Assembly: GCA_977017575.1 (NCBI GenBank)
Contig: CDRNVI010000019.1
Coordinates: 1 to 64,000, forward strand
Origin: Paramoeba atlantica
Lineage: Eukaryota; Protista; Discosea
DNA: 64,000 nucleotides
Direction of reading: 5' to 3'
The notes below the pieces were generated by a model, which saw nothing but the letters and a program-made list of their open reading frames with translations, made no database searches and was not told the origin of the DNA. The translations under genes and the position numbers were made by a program. Positions 1 through 33,500 of the stretch are shown in pieces (positions within the stretch are counted from its first letter, which is position 1; every line of letters starts with the position of its first letter).

Positions 1-3000
1 GGTTACTTGGCATTACTGTTCTGCTCACTATAACACCACCGGTATCCGAAACCTCATAGTGGAAACTACCTGACCCGGACAATGCCTCAATGGTAATTTC
101 AGCGTCGGGGGAAACGGAACAATCCAATAATTTTGTAAGTGAAACATCAGCTTCAAGAAACGGATGTACGGTAACCGCACTTGCATCGGTACAGCCATTA
201 CTGTCTCTAATGGAAACAGAGTAAATTCCGGGCGACACATTCGTGAATACCCCCCCGTTGTCATAGTAATTGGCCCCTCCATCTAGGGAGTAAAATATTT
301 GAGCCGCTCCACTAGTGGCAGTTATAGTAACTGTAGCAGGGTTACTACAATTGTCTATGCTCAAACCTGTAATGTTTGGATTGGGTGTCAAGGTCAAGGC
401 TACAGTGCCCAAAGGCGTTGAACACCCATACTGATCTTCAATGGTAACGTCGTAGTTCCCTGCAGGAGAATTTGCTGGAATCTCAACAGGATTGTCCGAA
501 GTAGAGGTAATGGTTACAAACGGCGCTGGTCCGGTTACGGTATAGGTGTAAGTTCCACCTCCACCTAGAGGGCTCTGGACCTGTATCAACCCGGGGTTGT
601 CACAGCTAATATTCTGTAGGACAACTGGGGTTCCTGTTAAGGGGTCCAATTCGTCCAGAAATTCGTTTTCAGTAGCACCAACACAGCTGTCAACACCACC
701 ATCAACTTCAACGACTTCAATGAAGTAGTTTCCAGATGCAAGGCTATTTACGGTTACATCCTGAGGAGAGGTGTAAGGCACATTTCCTCCGCTATTGGCA
801 ACAGCAACTGGGACACCGGTGCTCATATCATAAACCGTCCATCTGAACTCCGTTCCGAAGGGAGCCTGGTTGTCGGTAACTGTATAGGTAATACTTCCAT
901 TGCTTGCGCCATCACATGATGGTGTAATTGCAGAGGTAATTTCTAAAGGAATCGCTATTAAGTCGTTTACATTGACGCTACTTTCCCTAACACATCCCGC
1001 AAAATCCCTAACGTAGAAGGTGTATGTTCTACCTGGTACCAAGCCAACAAACGTGTGGGTGATGCCCAGAGCTAGTGGGGCAGTCCACGCTGCCGTGGCT
1101 GGGTTAAAGTTGGCCGGGTCATCCGAGTAGGCATATTCATAGGGTGCAGTACCGTTTTGTCCTCTTACAGTTACCTGAAGTTCGTTACAATTGACCACAA
1201 TGGGCAAAATGGTAATATCCAAGTCATCCAAAGGATAGGGAATGATAAATGGAGGGAAATCTGTTTGACACACCGTATTTCCAAAACCGTCCACAGTTCT
1301 CATGGATGGGTTTACAACATTACCAGAGGCATATCCTGTAAAGCGATCTGTAGTTCCGGGAATACTATTGTCTCCGGTCCATGTGGCACCACCATCTGCA
1401 CTAAATTCAATGGTTCCCAAAGTACCGGGATAAGCGGTAAATTCAAATCCGAAATCATTGGGATCTCCAGTACAAGTAGCAGGTGTAACTCCAAGAATGG
1501 TTGCTGTTAGTTCATCAGGGTTGGCAATGTTTATAGGGGTATCCGTTACGGCACAACCAGTCGCATCTATAACGTTGACTGTGTAGTTACCCGGCATTAA
1601 GTTGAAATAGGACCTGCTAGATACTAACACGTTAGTATCTGTTTGGTTGCCAGCCCCCCCATTATCTAAATCAACAATCTGAATGATATATGGACTGATA
1701 CCTGAAGTAATATCCACCTGAATTGAACCCAATCCATCATGACACAACGGGTCAGTTGGGGTATTGGTAATGGTCAACGGTGTGGCTGGATTAACAGTTA
1801 CAGTTTCCATAAACTCGCAGAAAGGCACAGTTGCTGAGTTGTCTCGAACGTAAACGTCGTAGTCTCCATCATTTCCAGCAGTAACCGTGAAGGTGCTTGT
1901 GGTTGAGAACAGGCCAGTTGGACTTGTTGTTGTTGGCACAAAAGCATATTCCAAGTTGGGTACTCCGCCAGATGCCGTTACCGCAATACTTCCGTCTGCG
2001 CAAGTACTGATGTCAACAACATCAACAGTAGCTACCAAAGCAGTGTTAATAGTTACGTTTTGCAAGGTTCCAGTACAGCCAAAACCGTCCCTAACATTAA
2101 TAGTGTAGTTTCCTGCGGCCAAGCCCGAAAAGGTATGTGTTGTGGAAGTGGCTGGTGAAGGAGTAATCCAAGGACCACCATCCAAACTAAACTGATAATC
2201 ACTATTTCCAGTAGTTACGTCCACTTGAATGGTTCCGTCGTTATTTCCACTGTAACAAGCTGTTGGAGTAGAAGTAAACACTATTGGAGTTGGGGGTGAC
2301 CACAGTAAGGGCCACATCAATAGGGTCTTCACATAAGTTAGTATCTCTTGCTCTAACAATATAATCTCCGGCAGTAAGTCCCGTAAAGGCATTTGAGTTT
2401 TGGTAGGCCGTTAATATTGTTCCAATGTTATCTTCCAACTGATATTCATAAGCTGGTGTTCCTCCTGTTGCTGTAGCCGTTATGGTGGCTCCGCCATTAG
2501 TACAGGTCAAAACATTGGTAATCGATGCTGATGTTACCACAACGGCGGGTTCCGATAAATTTTGATTGAGAGTAGTGGTACATGTATTGTCTAAAACATC
2601 TCGAATTTCAATGGAATGAGCACCAGCCGAAAGGGTATTTATGGTTACTGGGCTGGTCATAGAAACAGTAAATGGACCTATAGCACCAAGACGGTATTCA
2701 AAACCGTTTACAACATCAAAGTTGTCCACTTCAAAGGTAATGGACCCATCGGCACCAGCATTACAGCTGATATCTGAGAATGCTATGATATTAGCGCCAA
2801 GTGCATTGCCCGGCTCTACGGTAACTGTAGTTTGTGTAACACAATCACTGCCGTAATCCACGTCTATGGTATGTGTGCCAACAGTTACGTTACTAAAGAG
2901 GTTGCTTGCCTGAGCTGCCCCCCCATTTAGGCTGTATGTGTAGCTTGGGTCGTTTGGAAGCACCGTAATTTCTCCTGTTCCGTCACAATTATAAATGACG

Positions 3001-3650
3001 GTAGTGGTTAAAGTTGGTTCAACGGGCAGCGGAGCTATAATTACATCAAGAAGCGTAATAAAGCATCCAATTTCATTGGCATCCCTAACTTGAATGGTAT
3101 ACGTTCCGTCCGTTAACCCTGTGAATACAGTTCCTCCTGTTGTGGCTACAGTCCAAGGCCCACCATTAATATTGTATTGGTAATCTCCCGACCCACCTGT
3201 GGTTGGTGTTACACTTCCAACAGTAATTTCACCCAATTGTAAACAGGTATAACTTTGAGTCTGTTGGGCTTCAGCCACTAATTGATTTGGCTCAGTAACG
3301 GTTACTGTTCCTGTTGTTTCACAATTATTGGCATCCCTGATTCTTAGGTTATATGTTCCTTGGCTGAGGTTGATAAAGTTTCCGGATACCTGATAATTTG
3401 TGCCGTTGTCAATACTGAATTGATATGGAGCCTCTCCGCCTGAAGCCACCAAAGTGATGGTTCCATCGGACCCCCCAAAACAGCTTACAGGGGTAAAACT
3501 TGGGGTAATAACCAATGGAGCATCTTGTACAATAGTAATATCAAATGAAGCTTCACAGAAACCAGCCCCTCCATTATTATCCCGGATATACACATCATAA
3601 TCTCCGGCTCCGGTTGCGGTCACAGGGTTTGTGGCAGCAAAGTCTACGTG
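1..3650 (-). CDS. Bacterial (Flavobacteriaceae-like) SprB-repeat / T9SS large adhesin fragment, open at both ends, with a frameshift near 2290
   Basis: ORF 2241-3803 has repeated SprB/Ig-like units (VSCFGGSDGTITLVASGGEAPYQFSIDNG...Y.LRIRDANNC). Manual translation shows the reading continues in a shifted frame (TPTPIVFTSTPTACYSGNNDGTIQV...) toward position 1. One extra C in a C-run near 2290 explains the shift. The poly-K N-terminus in the ORF track is low-complexity junction sequence. Confidence 0.85.
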
Positions 3651-3985
3651 TGTTTTCTTCTTTTTCATTTTCTTCTGGTTTTTCTTCTTCTTCTTCTTTT
3701 TCTTCTTGTTTTTCTTCTTCTTCTTCTTCTTCTTTTTCTTCTTCTTGTTTTTCTTCTTTTTCTTTTTTTCCTTCTTCTTCTTGTTTTTCTTCTTCTTTTT
3801 CATTGTCTCTTCTTCTTCGTTTCTTACGCGTTGCTTTTGTATTCTTATGGGGAGAGGGTGAAGAGGAAGAAAAAAGCGAAAAAGGGAAAAAGAGAAAAAA
3901 AAGAAGACGAAGCCGAAGCGTTTCTTCCTTTTTCGGTCTTCGTAGGAGAAGAGGAAGCAGGAGATGAGGGGGAGGAGGAGGAGGC
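3650..3985. repeat. Low-complexity TTC/GAA tract at the junction between bacterial and eukaryotic sequence
   Basis: Degenerate (TTC)n/(TTTTTC)n directly visible; gives poly-K/poly-F/poly-E pseudo-ORFs. Confidence 0.9.
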
Positions 3986-14613: not shown

Positions 14614-14693
14614 TGACAAGAGAGGGGTTCGAACCCTCGCCCCGAAGGAGTAGTACCTGAAACTACCGTCTTAGACCACTCGACCATCTTGCC
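14614..14693 (-). tRNA. tRNA-Leu(CAG)
   Basis: GGCAAGATGGTCGAGTGGTCTAAG...GTAGT-TTCAGGT-ACTAC, variable arm CC-TTCG-GG, T-loop TTCGAAC. Confidence 0.93.
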
Positions 14694-14752
14694 TGCTACA
14701 GAAAAGCTAAGAGCTCTCCACAAGGTGTCAGAGTCAGCCATGAGCTGCAAAA

Positions 14753-14824
14753 TGCGCACGCCGGGAGTCGAACCCGGTCCGCGTGCTTGGAAGGCACGCA
14801 TCCTAACCGTTAGACTACGTGCGC
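14753..14824 (-). tRNA. tRNA-Gly(TCC)
   Basis: GCGCACG acceptor, anticodon arm CGTGC-CTTCCAA-GCACG, GGTTCGACTCC. Confidence 0.95.
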
Positions 14825-14897
14825 AACTGCACGAACGGAAACATGGTAAGCCTCTCTGAACCGTATAGGAAGGAGCTGCCTCAACTACAGGAGAAAA

Positions 14898-14969
14898 CTC
14901 CGCTGCCGGGGATCGAACCCGGATTTTCAGGGTGAAAGCCTGATGTTCTAACCATTATACTACAGCGGA
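14898..14969 (-). tRNA. tRNA-Glu(TTC)
   Basis: TCCGCTG acceptor, TCAGG-CTTTCAC-CCTGA, GGTTCGATCCC. Confidence 0.95.
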
Positions 14970-15023
14970 ACATAGCCGAACAAAAATTCGCCCAACACCA
15001 AGAAGCGAACGCAAGCTTAAATT

Positions 15024-15095
15024 TGATCGCGACAGGGATCGAACCTGCAACCGCCTGATCCGTAGTCAGACGCTCTACCATTGAGCCACGCGACC
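15024..15095 (-). tRNA. tRNA-Arg(ACG)
   Basis: GGTCGCG acceptor, TCTGA-CTACGGA-TCAGG, GGTTCGATCCC. Confidence 0.95.
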
Positions 15096-15168
15096 GCCCT
15101 GTGGAGCACAAACCCGTTTTGCGGGAATCATGCACAGATGTGCCACAGTGGCCTTGCCGGGTTTTGTT

Positions 15169-15242
15169 GCTCCTGTGGCCTAGTTGGTTATGGCATTGGT
15201 CTTATGAGCCGAGGATCGCGGGTTCGATCCCCGCCAGGAGCA
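15169..15242 (+). tRNA. tRNA-Ile(TAT), intronless
   Basis: GCTCCTG acceptor, TTGGT-CTTATGA-GCCGA, GGTTCGATCCC. The UAU anticodon is eukaryote-type. Confidence 0.92.
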
Positions 15243-15245
15243 TTT

Positions 15246-15331
15246 GCCGCGACGATCCTCGCTGGTGCGGGGGACAGGCTTCAAACCTGTAGGTGGGAAA
15301 TCCACAGCTGTTCGATTCGGCCCTCGCGGTG
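15246..15331 (+). tRNA. tRNA-Sec(TCA), eukaryotic 9/4 fold
   Basis: Anticodon arm ACAGG-CTTCAAA-CCTGT; 6-bp D stem CCTCGC-TGGT-GCGGGG; long variable arm GTGGG-AAA-TCCAC; 4-bp T stem GCTG-TTCGATT-CGGC; 9-bp acceptor with one mismatch; discriminator G; TTTTT immediately after. Confidence 0.93.
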
Positions 15332-29144: not shown

Positions 29145-31226
29145 CTACTTCAGACGTTCTGGTGTGTCGAATAAGGATCTAGCGGAGAATCTATTACCTT
29201 GAGAGCCCTTTTCAAGGAATTTTGTCATAAAACGAAGTGGATTCATTGAGGCAACCATTTCGTGTATTCTCGCATCCAACGACGATAGTTCGGCCTGAAC
29301 CTTCTTTTGGACTAGACCGACGGCTTCCTCTTGATGAGATTTGACTTCACTCAACCCTTGTTGTAGCTCGAGCTCCATTGCGGTCATATGTTCTGCGAGT
29401 ACATTGTTCTGTGCTGCGATACCTGTAATATCAGCGCTTAATTTGTCCACAAGTGATGACATACTTGCCTTTAGTGCCGATTGCTCACGCCGCAATTCAT
29501 TCATTTCTGTTTTAAGCAGCTGTGAGTATTCTGTGTAATGTTTATCACACCGTCCTTGAAGCTGCTGCACCTCAGTGTCGAACCGTCGCATTGCTTCCGA
29601 TAAAATTTCTTGCCCCTCTTTGTGCCTCACGCTCACTTTTTGAGTTACAATTTCCTTTAACTGCGACAACAGTGGATCAATTTCAGTGCTATATATGTTG
29701 CCTACAAAAGGTTTCCCAAGTTTAGGAGATTCTCGACGTGCTTGCGTAGAAATTGAGCTCGGTAAAGGGCGAGGAGCTGAGCTTGTAAAAGCTAGCGCGG
29801 AACTTGCAAACGCTCCCGTAGAACTAGGCATATCAGTATGTATTGCATTTGTAGGCAGATTGGTGTGTTCCACTTTTTGATTAGGATAGGGTGCAGTTGT
29901 ACTTTTGAGAAAATTGGCATGGGATGGGAGGGTGATATTACTTTGATCGTTTTCGTCTCTTTTTCTTTTCAGAGACTGCTCTGCATCTGTGAAATATTGA
30001 GTGGAATCCATGTCCGTAATATCATTACGTGCTTCTTGCGAAATAGCTTTGGATTTTTGTAATGCCTTGGATCTCGCTATTTCCTTCGAAATCCACTGTT
30101 GTACATTACTCTCCCGCATTTTCCGATATTCTGAATCCGATATGGCAAGTGAAACGCTAGGAAAATCTGTGGAATTCGAAGTAAACAGAATTTGTGATGG
30201 TAGCGTTGCGTCGTCACTTTTCAACTCGTAGTACGGTCTCATGGAAAATGGCAATTCTGCAAAACGGATAACAAGTTCTTTGTGGCGATTCAACTTTATC
30301 GCTTGAATGTGATCATACGGAACGGCTAGGTCAGCTTCTTGCCAATCCAACACCATAATGGTTTTCCCGAAAAAAGTAGTAATCTGGCTACCGTCACTGT
30401 GCTTATGAACCTTCGTTGTCGGCCCCGTAGAAGTTTTTCCTAATCCTGGCAGTGGCGAAAATGAGATGCTTTTTGATTCAATGGAGCAAACATGAGAATT
30501 CGGAGACGTCTGAGCTATCTCTAACATACTTCTTAACATACGCGCATCACCAGGTAACCGTTCCATGGAGTCGACAAATGGAGCACCAAGAACATCCGCT
30601 AATGACCGTAAGATTGCAGGATTGGATAGACCCAAGCAGTAAATAATTTCCATACACTGTAACTGAACATATATATCGCTTGTCTGACGAGTGTAAGACG
30701 CAATAATCCTGATGTCCCCAACAAACTTATGCGTTTCTGTTTCCTTGACAATGTTGGTTAGCAATGTACAACAGGCGCGAATAGTATCGTACGGAAGAGC
30801 AAAATGCAAAGTTGAGGAATCGGCTTCATCTATTCGTGCTTTACCAAGATACTCGAAAACTAAACGTCCCCATTTTTGCGCAAAACTAATTTTCAGTGGA
30901 GGATAGTCACATAGTGAGTCCAGTATGCTAAAGAGCTGAATTACTATTGCGTGCAGATGAACAGGGCTCGTATGAGCTGGGATGCTCGGCGTGACGAACA
31001 ATTCTGTAGATACGATGTCTAACAGGTTGCTTAAATCATCAATGTATTGCTCTTTGCTACCATGCTCTTCTGCCTTTTCCAACGCCTTAGAACTGCATAG
31101 AAAGTCCTGCAACTGGATTATAGTTCCGTATAGCTTGCTAATCGGCAATTCGTGAAATATCGAGACACCGGTTTTTATTACGTATTGCAAGGGATCCTGC
31201 AGAGAATTTTCACCCACAGACTTCAT
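29145..31226 (-). CDS. ARM + PH + C-terminal coiled-coil protein, possibly SYCP2-like / kinetochore KKT17-KKT18-like
   Basis: Helical N-terminus ending DIYVQLQCMEIIYCL (like SYCP2 DYDLQVAIxEALCR), a beta-rich PH-like segment (TTFFGKTIMVLDWQEADLAVPYDHIQAIKL), an S/T/P linker, then ~150 aa of heptad coiled coil. The family call is pattern recognition only. Confidence 0.5.
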   Translation of the reverse strand: MKSVGENSLQDPLQYVIKTGVSIFHELPISKLYGTIIQLQDFLCSSKALEKAEEHGSKEQYIDDLSNLLDIVSTELFVTPSIPAHTSPVHLHAIVIQLFSILDSLCDYPPLKISFAQKWGRLVFEYLGKARIDEADSSTLHFALPYDTIRACCTLLTNIVKETETHKFVGDIRIIASYTRQTSDIYVQLQCMEIIYCLGLSNPAILRSLADVLGAPFVDSMERLPGDARMLRSMLEIAQTSPNSHVCSIESKSISFSPLPGLGKTSTGPTTKVHKHSDGSQITTFFGKTIMVLDWQEADLAVPYDHIQAIKLNRHKELVIRFAELPFSMRPYYELKSDDATLPSQILFTSNSTDFPSVSLAISDSEYRKMRESNVQQWISKEIARSKALQKSKAISQEARNDITDMDSTQYFTDAEQSLKRKRDENDQSNITLPSHANFLKSTTAPYPNQKVEHTNLPTNAIHTDMPSSTGAFASSALAFTSSAPRPLPSSISTQARRESPKLGKPFVGNIYSTEIDPLLSQLKEIVTQKVSVRHKEGQEILSEAMRRFDTEVQQLQGRCDKHYTEYSQLLKTEMNELRREQSALKASMSSLVDKLSADITGIAAQNNVLAEHMTAMELELQQGLSEVKSHQEEAVGLVQKKVQAELSSLDARIHEMVASMNPLRFMTKFLEKGSQGNRFSARSLFDTPERLK

Positions 31227-31875
31227 AACGGTTTCGAATAAGGATACTAAGAAAATTGTCAGTTCTAATTTTATAGCTGATACTATAAGACTATCGTTTT
31301 TCTTTTTTGTTCTACAATAAAAAAATGCTTCTGGACTTGCGTTTCACATTGTCTCCCTTACTTGAGTTTGTATACTGCCCCCTACTTAAGAGTCCGAGGG
31401 GTACCCCGCACGGAAATCCTTTTTTCTTATGAGCCCAGTTTTTTGTACCACGGAGATTAATTTTCATGGTCTCCTAAGTCCAAACGTCCGAAGTCGGCGG
31501 ACGCTTAATTAGGGAGGGGCCGTACTTGTTATGACTACACAGCGCTATTTTCCGAAAAAATATTTCCCAAAGAATCTTTTTTCAAAAGCCTTCTCAATAA
31601 TTCAGACGAATGCATTTCCAATGCTACAGTGAGTGCCGTTATAACCACGTACTGGTTGTAGCAACTGCAGAACTGATTTTTTTTGCATTTGTATTTACAT
31701 TTATAATACAATGTATGATTACCGTAGACTACAGTACACGTAAAATTAAATACAATACACCGTGAATTAAATACAGACTACCGTAAAAAATCAATTTTAC
31801 AACGGTTAACAAAATTGGTGCTTAGATATACCTCGTGTGTTCTATTTTCCAAGCGCGGATTCCTAAATGATATCC

Positions 31876-31948
31876 CACTTTGAATACTCGCTTTTTATCA
31901 ACCAAAAAAATTGGTAAATAAAAGTCATGATGAGTTTGAGTCAAAGTG
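31876..31948 (-). promoter_or_regulatory. Candidate eukaryotic SECIS element in the SPS2 3' UTR
   Basis: Minus strand: CACTTTGA...ATGA-CTTTTATTTACC-AA-TTTTTTT-GGTTGATAAAAAGC-GA-GTAT-TCAAAGTG. Spacing is AUGA-N12-AA-N21-GA, with a pairable helix II and an 8-bp helix I. Confidence 0.6.
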
Positions 31949-32141
31949 TTCACAGAAAAACACTCATAGGTGCTTGTATGCATACTAAATATGTATGCTT
32001 GTGTCCGCACTGACTTGTACCTCTATATAAGAGTTATTTCGATGAATTCATTATCCTTCGTGTTACTTGTAAACCGGAATGTGAAGAAGAAAAATGAACC
32101 GGAGCTTAAAATTTAACAGAATGGCATAGCCCTTCTTTCCC

Positions 32142-33500
32142 TCAAAGTGCAGGTTGCACCTTCGTAGCGTGTGGCTCCTCATTTTGGCTTACATCAAGAA
32201 AAAAGTCTTGCGCTGATACATCGACCACAATTACATTGGAGAAACCAGAAGCTGCTTCTTTTTGAACATCTATGACCTCATGCTGGTGTGCTTTCATTCC
32301 ATATACTTTCCTTGCAATGGTATAATCCTCGTCGCTCGAATACAGCTCAGCAAGAGTCTGATTGCAAATCAATGTGCTACCAGTAGTGAGAGATTCATCA
32401 GAATTTAAACTTGAGTCTACAGGTCGAACGCAACCCACAATCCAACCACGAATGCGATCAAGCTCTTCCAATTCCTTTAAGAAAGAGGTGGCTATCGAGA
32501 TATTTGCAAGAGCAATTAAGAGACCACCGGATGTTTCCACACTGCGACCCTCCAAAAGGACGTTACTTTGTTTTGTTGTTCCAGCTATGCACGGGAGAGT
32601 ATGTATTTGTAGACGTAATGAACTTCTTTGCGCTTCGGCAAGATTTGTAGCGTGTCCGAGTATACCATACCCTGTTATATCTGTAGCCCCATGTGCCCTA
32701 TATTTGTGCATAAGACGAGCAGCCGTACGGTTATGATGCAACATAGAACGAACAGCTAGCTGATAATCTTCAATGATTTCATTTGCTTCCGCTAGGCTGG
32801 AAACTTCGTTCCTGTCTCGAGCAACGTTATACCGATGTACGGCAGGTTGCGTTCCTAACGGCTTCGTCAGAACCAGTACATCCCCAACTTCGAGTCCGCT
32901 GGGTGGAATAAAGTCATCCTCGTGCACTACGGCGGTTGCGACTCCCCCAATTATGGGCCAGGGGTTCAGTATTGTTTGACCGCCTGAGACCTGACAATCA
33001 GCTTGACGCATTCCGTCCGCAAAGCCTTGCATCATAAGACGTGTAACAGTATTTCGTATGTCACCACATATTTCTGTACAACTACCTACTAACATTAATG
33101 TGGTATCAGCACGATCTATTCCAAGGCTGTATACATCAGATAAGACGTTAGCAGCTCCAATAAGACCTTGCGTATAAGGATCGTCAACGAGAGGAAAGAA
33201 GAAGTCTGTGGTTGACACAATGTACAGAGTATGACCATGGATCTTGCTCAGTGGTTTAATCGAACAGTCGATATTGTCAGAATTAGTAACACAATGAATT
33301 CCTGAACTTTCTAAAAGATTTTTAAGAACACAGCGGGGTACTTTGCAACCTCAGCCTCGCAAGGATGAGTATTTCGTAAGACGAAAATCAAGGGGCAAAT
33401 CACTTGTCTTCGTAGATGTCGAGTTCGCCTCAGCAATGCAGTTGAAGTTGATAGCTTTTTGCGAAATAGAGGCAGAGCTTCTATTTTCCACCTTATTCAT
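32142..33500 (-). CDS. SEPHS2: Selenophosphate synthetase 2, selenocysteine-containing (UGA at 33351-33353), 452 aa
   Basis: The track ORF (TTDFFFP, ANVLSDVY, GGQT..NPW, DITGYGILGH, ETSGGLL) extends upstream in frame to ATG 33500 through FRLTKYSSLRG-TGA-GCKVP, the SelD active-site G(U/C)GCK motif. Confidence 0.92.

Follow-up and report, generated by a model that had tools for sequence, protein, structure and literature searches.

The 64,000-nt stretch analyzed here (the window; positions 1 to 64,000 of contig CDRNVI010000019.1 in the Paramoeba atlantica assembly GCA_977017575.1) carries on its minus strand a gene for the selenium-donor enzyme selenophosphate synthetase 2 (SPS2; SelD, selenide, water dikinase) that is interrupted by an in-frame TGA. 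We consider it likely, at a probability of about 0.75, that this is a genuine selenocysteine (Sec)-type SPS2 whose UGA is recoded by means of a form-2 selenocysteine insertion sequence (SECIS) element with a GUGA/GGAU core. From the sequence comparisons, the narrower identification of the gene at 33500..32142 as Sec-type SPS2, with the UGA correctly located, is very probable. In the proposed mechanism, tRNA-Sec and eEFSec would recode the UGA at 33353-33351, directed by the element in the 3' untranslated region (UTR). The SECIS core would be a GUGA/GA kink-turn quartet (31953-31950 with 31875-31872), and on this quartet would stand an 8-bp helix II with two more positions, a CAA bulge placing AA 12 nt after the UGA of the quartet, and a long helix III. 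The element would lie within the mature mRNA and be bound by SBP2, leading to Sec insertion.

The SPS2 coding sequence occupies 32142..33500. Read from the ATG at 33500 to the TGA stop at 32144-32142 (included in the coordinates), the frame has a single interruption, the TGA at 33353-33351, which lies in the sequence SLRG-*-GCKVP; a TAG is found two codons 5' of the ATG. The predicted full-length product would have 452 residues with Sec as residue 50, preceded by 49 codons at 33354..33500. As the preliminary description of this locus had stated, the gene escapes the open reading frame (ORF) list, in which it is broken into a 49-aa ORF (33351..33500) and a GTG-started 358-aa ORF (32142..33218). 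The pieces before and after the TGA were searched separately. In the piece after the TGA, Pfam domains AIRS (PF00586, 38.9 bits) and AIRS_C (PF02769, 40.2 bits) were both detected above their cut-offs, and this piece scored 195.8 bits with the NCBIfam selD equivalog TIGR00476 (cut-off 125), while SPS2 fell below the cut-offs of both the bacterial and the archaeal PRK selD equivalog models. The closest solved structure was L. major SEPHS2 (5L16, E 1.5e-73), with human SEPHS1 next; a C-terminal extension of ~90 residues (32142-32420, minus strand) lies outside the part that aligns with solved SelD structures. The sequence before the TGA, LPLDFRLTKYSSLRG, aligns with LPEEFTLTDYTRLKG of Trypanosoma SEPHS2 and also with the sequence upstream of the TGA in related genes (see below). 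The alignment of this N-terminal piece with the Trypanosoma N-terminus places the TGA at the catalytic Sec/Cys site of SelD, in the loop R-G-U(TGA)-G-C-K-V-P, where the Sec codon stands three residues ahead of the catalytic Lys. The TGA aligns with the Cys of the GCSCK and GCGCK forms and with the G*GCK of relatives.

The in-frame UGA at the catalytic position, claimed in the preliminary description, was thus confirmed by translation, and it recurs in the other haplotype, in a further contig and in relatives. A check of the reads for TGT or TGC had also been proposed. Contigs of four runs from two studies (one of the runs may be the source of the assembly) cover 33351-33353, and all of them have TGA and no other letter. 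A second SPS2 copy on contig C43, 99% identical and with the same TGA, is evidently the other haplotype. The TGA is retained as well in a Joint Genome Institute (JGI) contig (L001; 2244 nt, 99% identical), which has an in-frame 9-nt deletion just 3' of the SPS2 ATG (window 33491-33499 versus L001 112-113); the predicted start is MENRSS there, as against MNKVENRSS in the two haplotigs. Among the 20 window ORFs of at least 200 aa, six are terminated by TGA, and no in-frame stop occurs among their 11,165 codons. TGA does not serve generally as a sense codon in this genome.

We also looked for the machinery of Sec decoding. A tRNA-Sec with anticodon UCA was identified by ARAGORN at 15246..15331 on the plus strand, ~17 kb from SPS2. 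It belongs to a cluster of six tRNAs at 14614-15331, begins 3 nt past tRNA-Ile(UAU) (15168-15243, plus strand), and has the four other tRNAs of the cluster on the opposite strand. SepSecS was found in both haplotigs (362.9 bits), and eEFSec is encoded at L056 787-2562 (G000:C12) as a 591-aa protein with the Pfam domain euk_SelB_III and human eEFSec as its best PDB match (5IZK, E 1e-90). The best selB-model match overall, on contig C19 just outside the window (L055 384-1745), is an ordinary EF-Tu. Two thioredoxin reductases, TR1 (L008 51-1466, G000:C7) and TR2 (L017 1501-2874, G000:C41), end in G-C-TGA-G followed by a stop (GCUG). No further SPS gene was found in the genome beyond the allelic copy on C43. 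These findings indicate that Sec is decoded in this genome and that TGA is elsewhere a stop codon. The glutathione peroxidase genes contain Cys, not Sec. One such Cys-containing gene (L006, G000:C163:123109-123565, minus strand; NVASWCGYT) has its halves in different frames with ~118 nt of CT-rich sequence between them, which may be an intron, a frameshift or the mark of a pseudogene. Genome searches with Pfam Rdx and SelK_SelG gave no match; the SelK control was also unmatched, so this negative is uninformative.

The proposed SECIS as a whole (helix I, internal loop, quartet, helix II, AA bulge and helix III) spans 31862..31970 on the minus strand, as supported by folds, a motif scan and shuffles, and lies 189-280 nt downstream of the SPS2 stop. 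Its 5' core GUGA (31950..31953), within UUCUGUGAA, is followed by the 5' strand of helix II, CACUUUGA (31941..31948), which forms eight Watson-Crick pairs with UCAAAGUG (31876..31883) in every fold. Next to the latter is the 3' core GGAU (31872..31875), with its GA at 31874-31873; GGAU follows helix II in both TR SECIS as well. Eight contiguous pairs adjoin the quartet (GUGA-A, 31953-31949; G-GA-U, 31875-31872), and nine of the first ten positions are paired. Above helix II is the CAA bulge, with an AAA motif at 31935..31937 whose AA (31937-31936) is unpaired in minimum free energy (MFE) folds, 12 nt after the UGA of the core. ACUC/GAGU then opens the apical helix III (31886..31935), which continues into an AU-rich hairpin found only at the SPS2 locus and on the other haplotig. 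In the MFE fold of a 116-nt stretch, helix I consists of CCUA/UAGG and AGUG/CAUU; other stretches fold the flanks differently.

How often such a core arises was estimated with generic SECIS criteria, which asked for a UGA preceded by A or G, for AA at a distance of 10-13 nt and for a stack of 8 or more contiguous pairs on the quartet. The GUGA/GGAU core is one of only three sites that qualify in 128 kb (both strands of the window), and when the 915-nt UTR was shuffled 20,000 times with its dinucleotides preserved, a qualifying site occurred in 0.6% of the shuffles.

Comparison with other elements points to the same core. The SECIS of TR1 (L008 1501-1560; Rfam SECIS_1, 34.8 bits) has UGUGAA, a 10-bp helix, a UAA bulge, an ACC/GGU mini-stem and GGAU. 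An element unseen by Rfam lies 177 nt past the UGA of TR2 (L017 ~3038-3092), with UGUGAA...AAA...GGAU and a 10-12-bp helix. The 3' UTR of one orthologous SPS2 (L053) has UUGUGAU-N11-AAA and folds cleanly as a form-2 SECIS with a GUGA core, a GAA bulge and an ACC/GGU mini-stem like that of TR1. In another orthologous SPS2 (L051), CUGUGAAC-N10-AAA is located ~50 nt past the stop; the end of this Logan contig (L051 1403-1421) is Illumina adapter (AGATCGGAAGAGC...), and the SECIS is therefore halved. When the five 5' halves (the SPS2 UTR, the L051 and L053 3' UTRs, TR1 and TR2) were aligned without gaps, UGUGA and AAA were invariant at fixed spacing. UGUGA-N12-AAA occurs 6 times in 128 kb against 4.8 expected, and given this background its presence by chance in each of three short SPS2 UTRs is very unlikely. 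SECIS with GUGA_AA are known from green algae and sponges, and cores tend to be uniform or organism-specific (PMC3473315).

The element resembles known form-2 GUGA_AA SECIS (PMC3473315; RF00031) in its NUGA/GA quartet, a helix II of ~10 positions, an extra helix above the AA and the unpaired AA 12 nt after UGA, but it differs from them in that it is unmatched by RF00031, has a helix III of ~50 nt rather than a few bp, and has a weak helix I. It shares with the TR SECIS of the same genome the identical UGUGAA and GGAU, the AAA spacing and a pyrimidine-rich 5' internal loop; in the TR elements, helix II is 10 bp long and the apical mini-stems have 3 bp, whereas in the SPS2 element 8 bp are followed by a C-U mismatch, a U-A pair and the long helix III. 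The signature UGUGA-N12-AAA ... GA, mostly missed by Rfam, could be used to find the remaining selenoproteome of this genome.

Several observations weigh against a GUGA-core SECIS. Helix I is weak, being two 4-bp blocks split by a 2-nt bulge, and the ~50-nt apical helix III is well above the usual length. Rfam SECIS_1 (RF00031) had no match at E<=10 in the UTR, the whole locus or a 131-nt stretch, and covariance models built from TR1 only (R1) or from TR1 and TR2 (R2) failed to recover the element at E<=10. The Rfam negative is weak: of three comparison elements put through the same scans, those of TR2 and L053 were missed and TR1 reached 34.8 bits against a threshold of 35. The covariance-model negatives likewise carry little power, since with these ad hoc models TR2 and L053 score no higher than noise (12-15 bits) and the top window matches are short chance matches. 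The scan criteria were set after the element had been seen, and the scan and shuffle figures are indicative only. Both haplotigs and the JGI contig are identical across the element, and with no haplotype variation inside it a test of within-species covariation is impossible; MAFFT gave no structural alignment of the SECIS 3' halves. Finally, the transcript evidence consists of assembled contigs only. The element is spanned by the JGI contig and by a run from 2015 that is guessed to be RNA. In kinetoplastids, polyadenylation is usually coupled to a downstream splice acceptor. Given this coupling and the position of the element 190-280 nt into the 915-nt intergenic region, the SECIS should lie inside the 3' UTR. 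Autoregulation of SPS2 is a standing hypothesis, and a Sec-containing SPS2 may exert positive feedback on its own synthesis.

Other SECIS-like sites were rejected. One lies inside the coding sequence (33375-33500, minus strand), with the start-codon ATGA, a GA at 33375 and 11 pairs (three of them G-U); it was taken as chance, since it precedes the UGA and has a paired AA, and since one of its strands is lost with the 9-nt deletion of L001. A different AUGA, at 31967, has only six pairs with GGAU at 31875-31872 as its partner, three of them G-U. Genome-wide, RF00031 matched TR1 on both haplotigs, a 28-bit pair (L010/L011 1501-1561) and one 20-bit site; the 28-bit pair is probably false, being in a repeat-rich low-complexity region with no gene upstream. 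The pattern TGTGAA-N11-AAA-N8..38-GGAT gave 113 matches genome-wide against 102 for a reversed control. Among the matches listed, only those of TR1 and TR2 have a helix adjoining the core by eye, and no new selenoprotein gene was found among them.

The preliminary description had placed a candidate SECIS in this same stem-loop with another core, AUGA-N12-AA-N21-GA. The stem-loop and the literal motif are indeed present ~190-280 nt after the stop (AUGA 31928-31925, AA 31912-31911 and GA 31889-31888, all within helix III), and the region 31952-31872 folds. That Sec is inserted by means of this inner core, with CACUUUGA/UCAAAGUG serving as helix I of a form-1 element and the AA in a 9-nt apical loop, is improbable, whereas a SECIS built on the GUGA/GGAU core is likely. 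An AUGA with AA exactly 12 nt downstream is canonical, and the strong 8-bp helix would suit as helix I. However, only four contiguous pairs stack on the inner quartet before a 2-nt offset, six of the first ten positions are paired and the 5' internal loop would be 12 nt. Sites of this quality number 39 in 128 kb, or ~0.28 expected per 915-nt UTR, and the AUGA core is no better than chance as a SECIS core. In every MFE fold the GA is Watson-Crick paired in ACUC/GAGU and the AA is paired with UU, and both the orthologous SPS2 UTRs and the TR SECIS use a core other than AUGA. A concern that the ACTC/GAGT pairing might compete with the SECIS falls away if the core is, as is likely, GUGA...GGAU (31953/31875), this pairing then being simply the base of apical helix III. 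A nested two-state SECIS, in which the outer GUGA/GGAU and inner AUGA/GA cores exclude each other, the inner GA being engaged in ACUC/GAGU whenever the outer form is folded, seems very unlikely. If it were true, a 50-nt hairpin could switch the mRNA between Sec-competent and incompetent folds, a tunable and perhaps selenium-responsive control of the synthesis of the selenium-donor enzyme itself.

Two other explanations dispense with Sec altogether. The TGA could be a true stop, leaving a pseudogene, a mere 49-residue peptide or an N-terminally truncated enzyme; ORF callers do split the gene, its branch in the tree is long (1.08) and Rfam detects no canonical SECIS. Yet the reading frame is open and conserved on either side of the TGA, which falls precisely on the catalytic codon, and four related genes also have TGA there. 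The genome, moreover, keeps tRNA-Sec, SepSecS, eEFSec and Sec-type TRs with no second SPS gene except the allelic copy. The first Met past the TGA is deep within the AIRS domain, and an N-terminally deleted trypanosomatid SEPHS2 was unable to complement selD (PMC7595633). A true stop is thus a slim prospect. Reading of the UGA as Cys or Trp, whether through near-cognate decoding or through a reassigned code, is hardly credible, even though some trypanosomatids, Blastocrithidia, read UGA as Trp (PMC12153298). TGA terminates 6 of the 20 long ORFs and is never in frame within them, the stop of SPS2 itself is TGA, the codon is at a position where Sec and Cys alternate across the family, and the Sec machinery is present.

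Next to the Sec-type SPS2 with its proposed GUGA-core SECIS, we considered the related sequences. Among its top 120 database relatives, 112 are truncated ORFs whose start lies at the Sec site or past it, and the remaining eight, from Trypanosoma species and an oomycete, have an N-terminus bearing G-C-x-C-K. ORF callers typically give such truncated frames when run on Sec genes. The DNA of four such N-terminally cut relatives, which include the nearest ones, was examined, and all four have an in-frame TGA at the Sec codon of SPS2 with conserved sequence upstream: LTDYTKLQG*GCKVPQ (L050), LTDYAKMKG*GCKVPQ (L051/L052), LTDYAELRG*GCKVPQ (L053) and LTDYTGLKG*GCKIPQ (L054). When the Trypanosoma N-terminus was used as query, every named trypanosomatid retrieved had the Cys signature GCSCK, as did Trypanoplasma borreli and ~30 unnamed sequences. 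This agrees with the published use of Cys by trypanosomatid SEPHS2 (PMC7595633), which the preliminary description had cited correctly together with the trypanosomatid selenoproteome of SelK, SelT and SelTryp (PMC1557815).

A SelD phylogeny, also proposed there, was inferred as a quick maximum-likelihood tree with IQ-TREE, and branches were assessed by the Shimodaira-Hasegawa-like approximate likelihood ratio test (SH-aLRT). SPS2 grouped with PhF-6 and PhM-4, which are free-living Prokinetoplastina, and with the environmental sequences P0003, P0038 and P0093, all three of them TGA-bearing (SH-aLRT 93). The GCSCK sequences formed a metakinetoplastid clade (SH-aLRT 99), and this clade, the SPS2 group and a third, TGA-bearing group together formed a single clade (SH-aLRT 97). 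The exact placement of SPS2 is provisional because the query branch is long, 1.08, and only a quick search was made. The downstream neighbor at 29145-31226 has the Pfam domain "Kinetoplastid PH-like domain," which fits a kinetoplastid genome, and the source genome appears to be an early-branching kinetoplastid.

The ancestral SPS has been argued to be a selenoprotein, with SPS2 serving as a marker of Sec use throughout protists (Mariotti et al. 2015, PMC4561486); Sec-SPS2 is the common and probably the ancestral eukaryotic state. With Sec common and probably ancestral (PMC4561486), and with 112 of 120 relatives cut at the Sec site, a Sec-SPS2 is to be expected here, and the Sec appears to be a retained ancestral state. 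The proposal that this lineage keeps a Sec-SPS2 therefore stood, and the tree agrees with it. The accompanying proposal of a Sec-to-Cys conversion within trypanosomatids did not, because GCSCK is common to trypanosomatids, Trypanoplasma borreli and the relatives in their clade, and the Cys clade extends past trypanosomatids. The switch is shared by at least parabodonids and trypanosomatids and hence predates the latter. This dates the conversion in kinetoplastid SPS2: Prokinetoplastina-like lineages retain Sec, and trypanosomatids and Trypanoplasma have the Cys form (GCSCK) in common. Current views are not overturned by these results, as selenoprotein SPS2 is already regarded as the ancestral eukaryotic state.

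With the Sec-SPS2/SEPHS2 of other eukaryotes, such as mammals and protists (PMC4561486), the gene shares the family, the domain architecture, the G-U-G-C-K loop and a 3' UTR SECIS; as there, the enzyme would by analogy be needed for its own Sec supply. It differs from them in its long branch, the ~90-residue lineage-specific C-terminal extension, the GUGA core and the great length of the apical helix. Trypanosomatid SEPHS2 (L. major 5L16 and T. brucei; PMC7595633) belongs to the same larger clade and has the conserved N-terminal LTDY..LKG motif, but has Cys in G-C-S-C-K where the SPS2 of the window has Sec in G-U-G-C-K. The corrected frame amends the annotation of an essential selenium-pathway gene that is split here into two ORFs, and in public protein sets most protist SPS2 entries start after the Sec codon.

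Elsewhere in the window, a 520-aa ORF (2241-3803, minus strand) contains SprB repeats and a Y_Y_Y domain. This combination is typically bacterial and is odd in a kinetoplastid-like contig.

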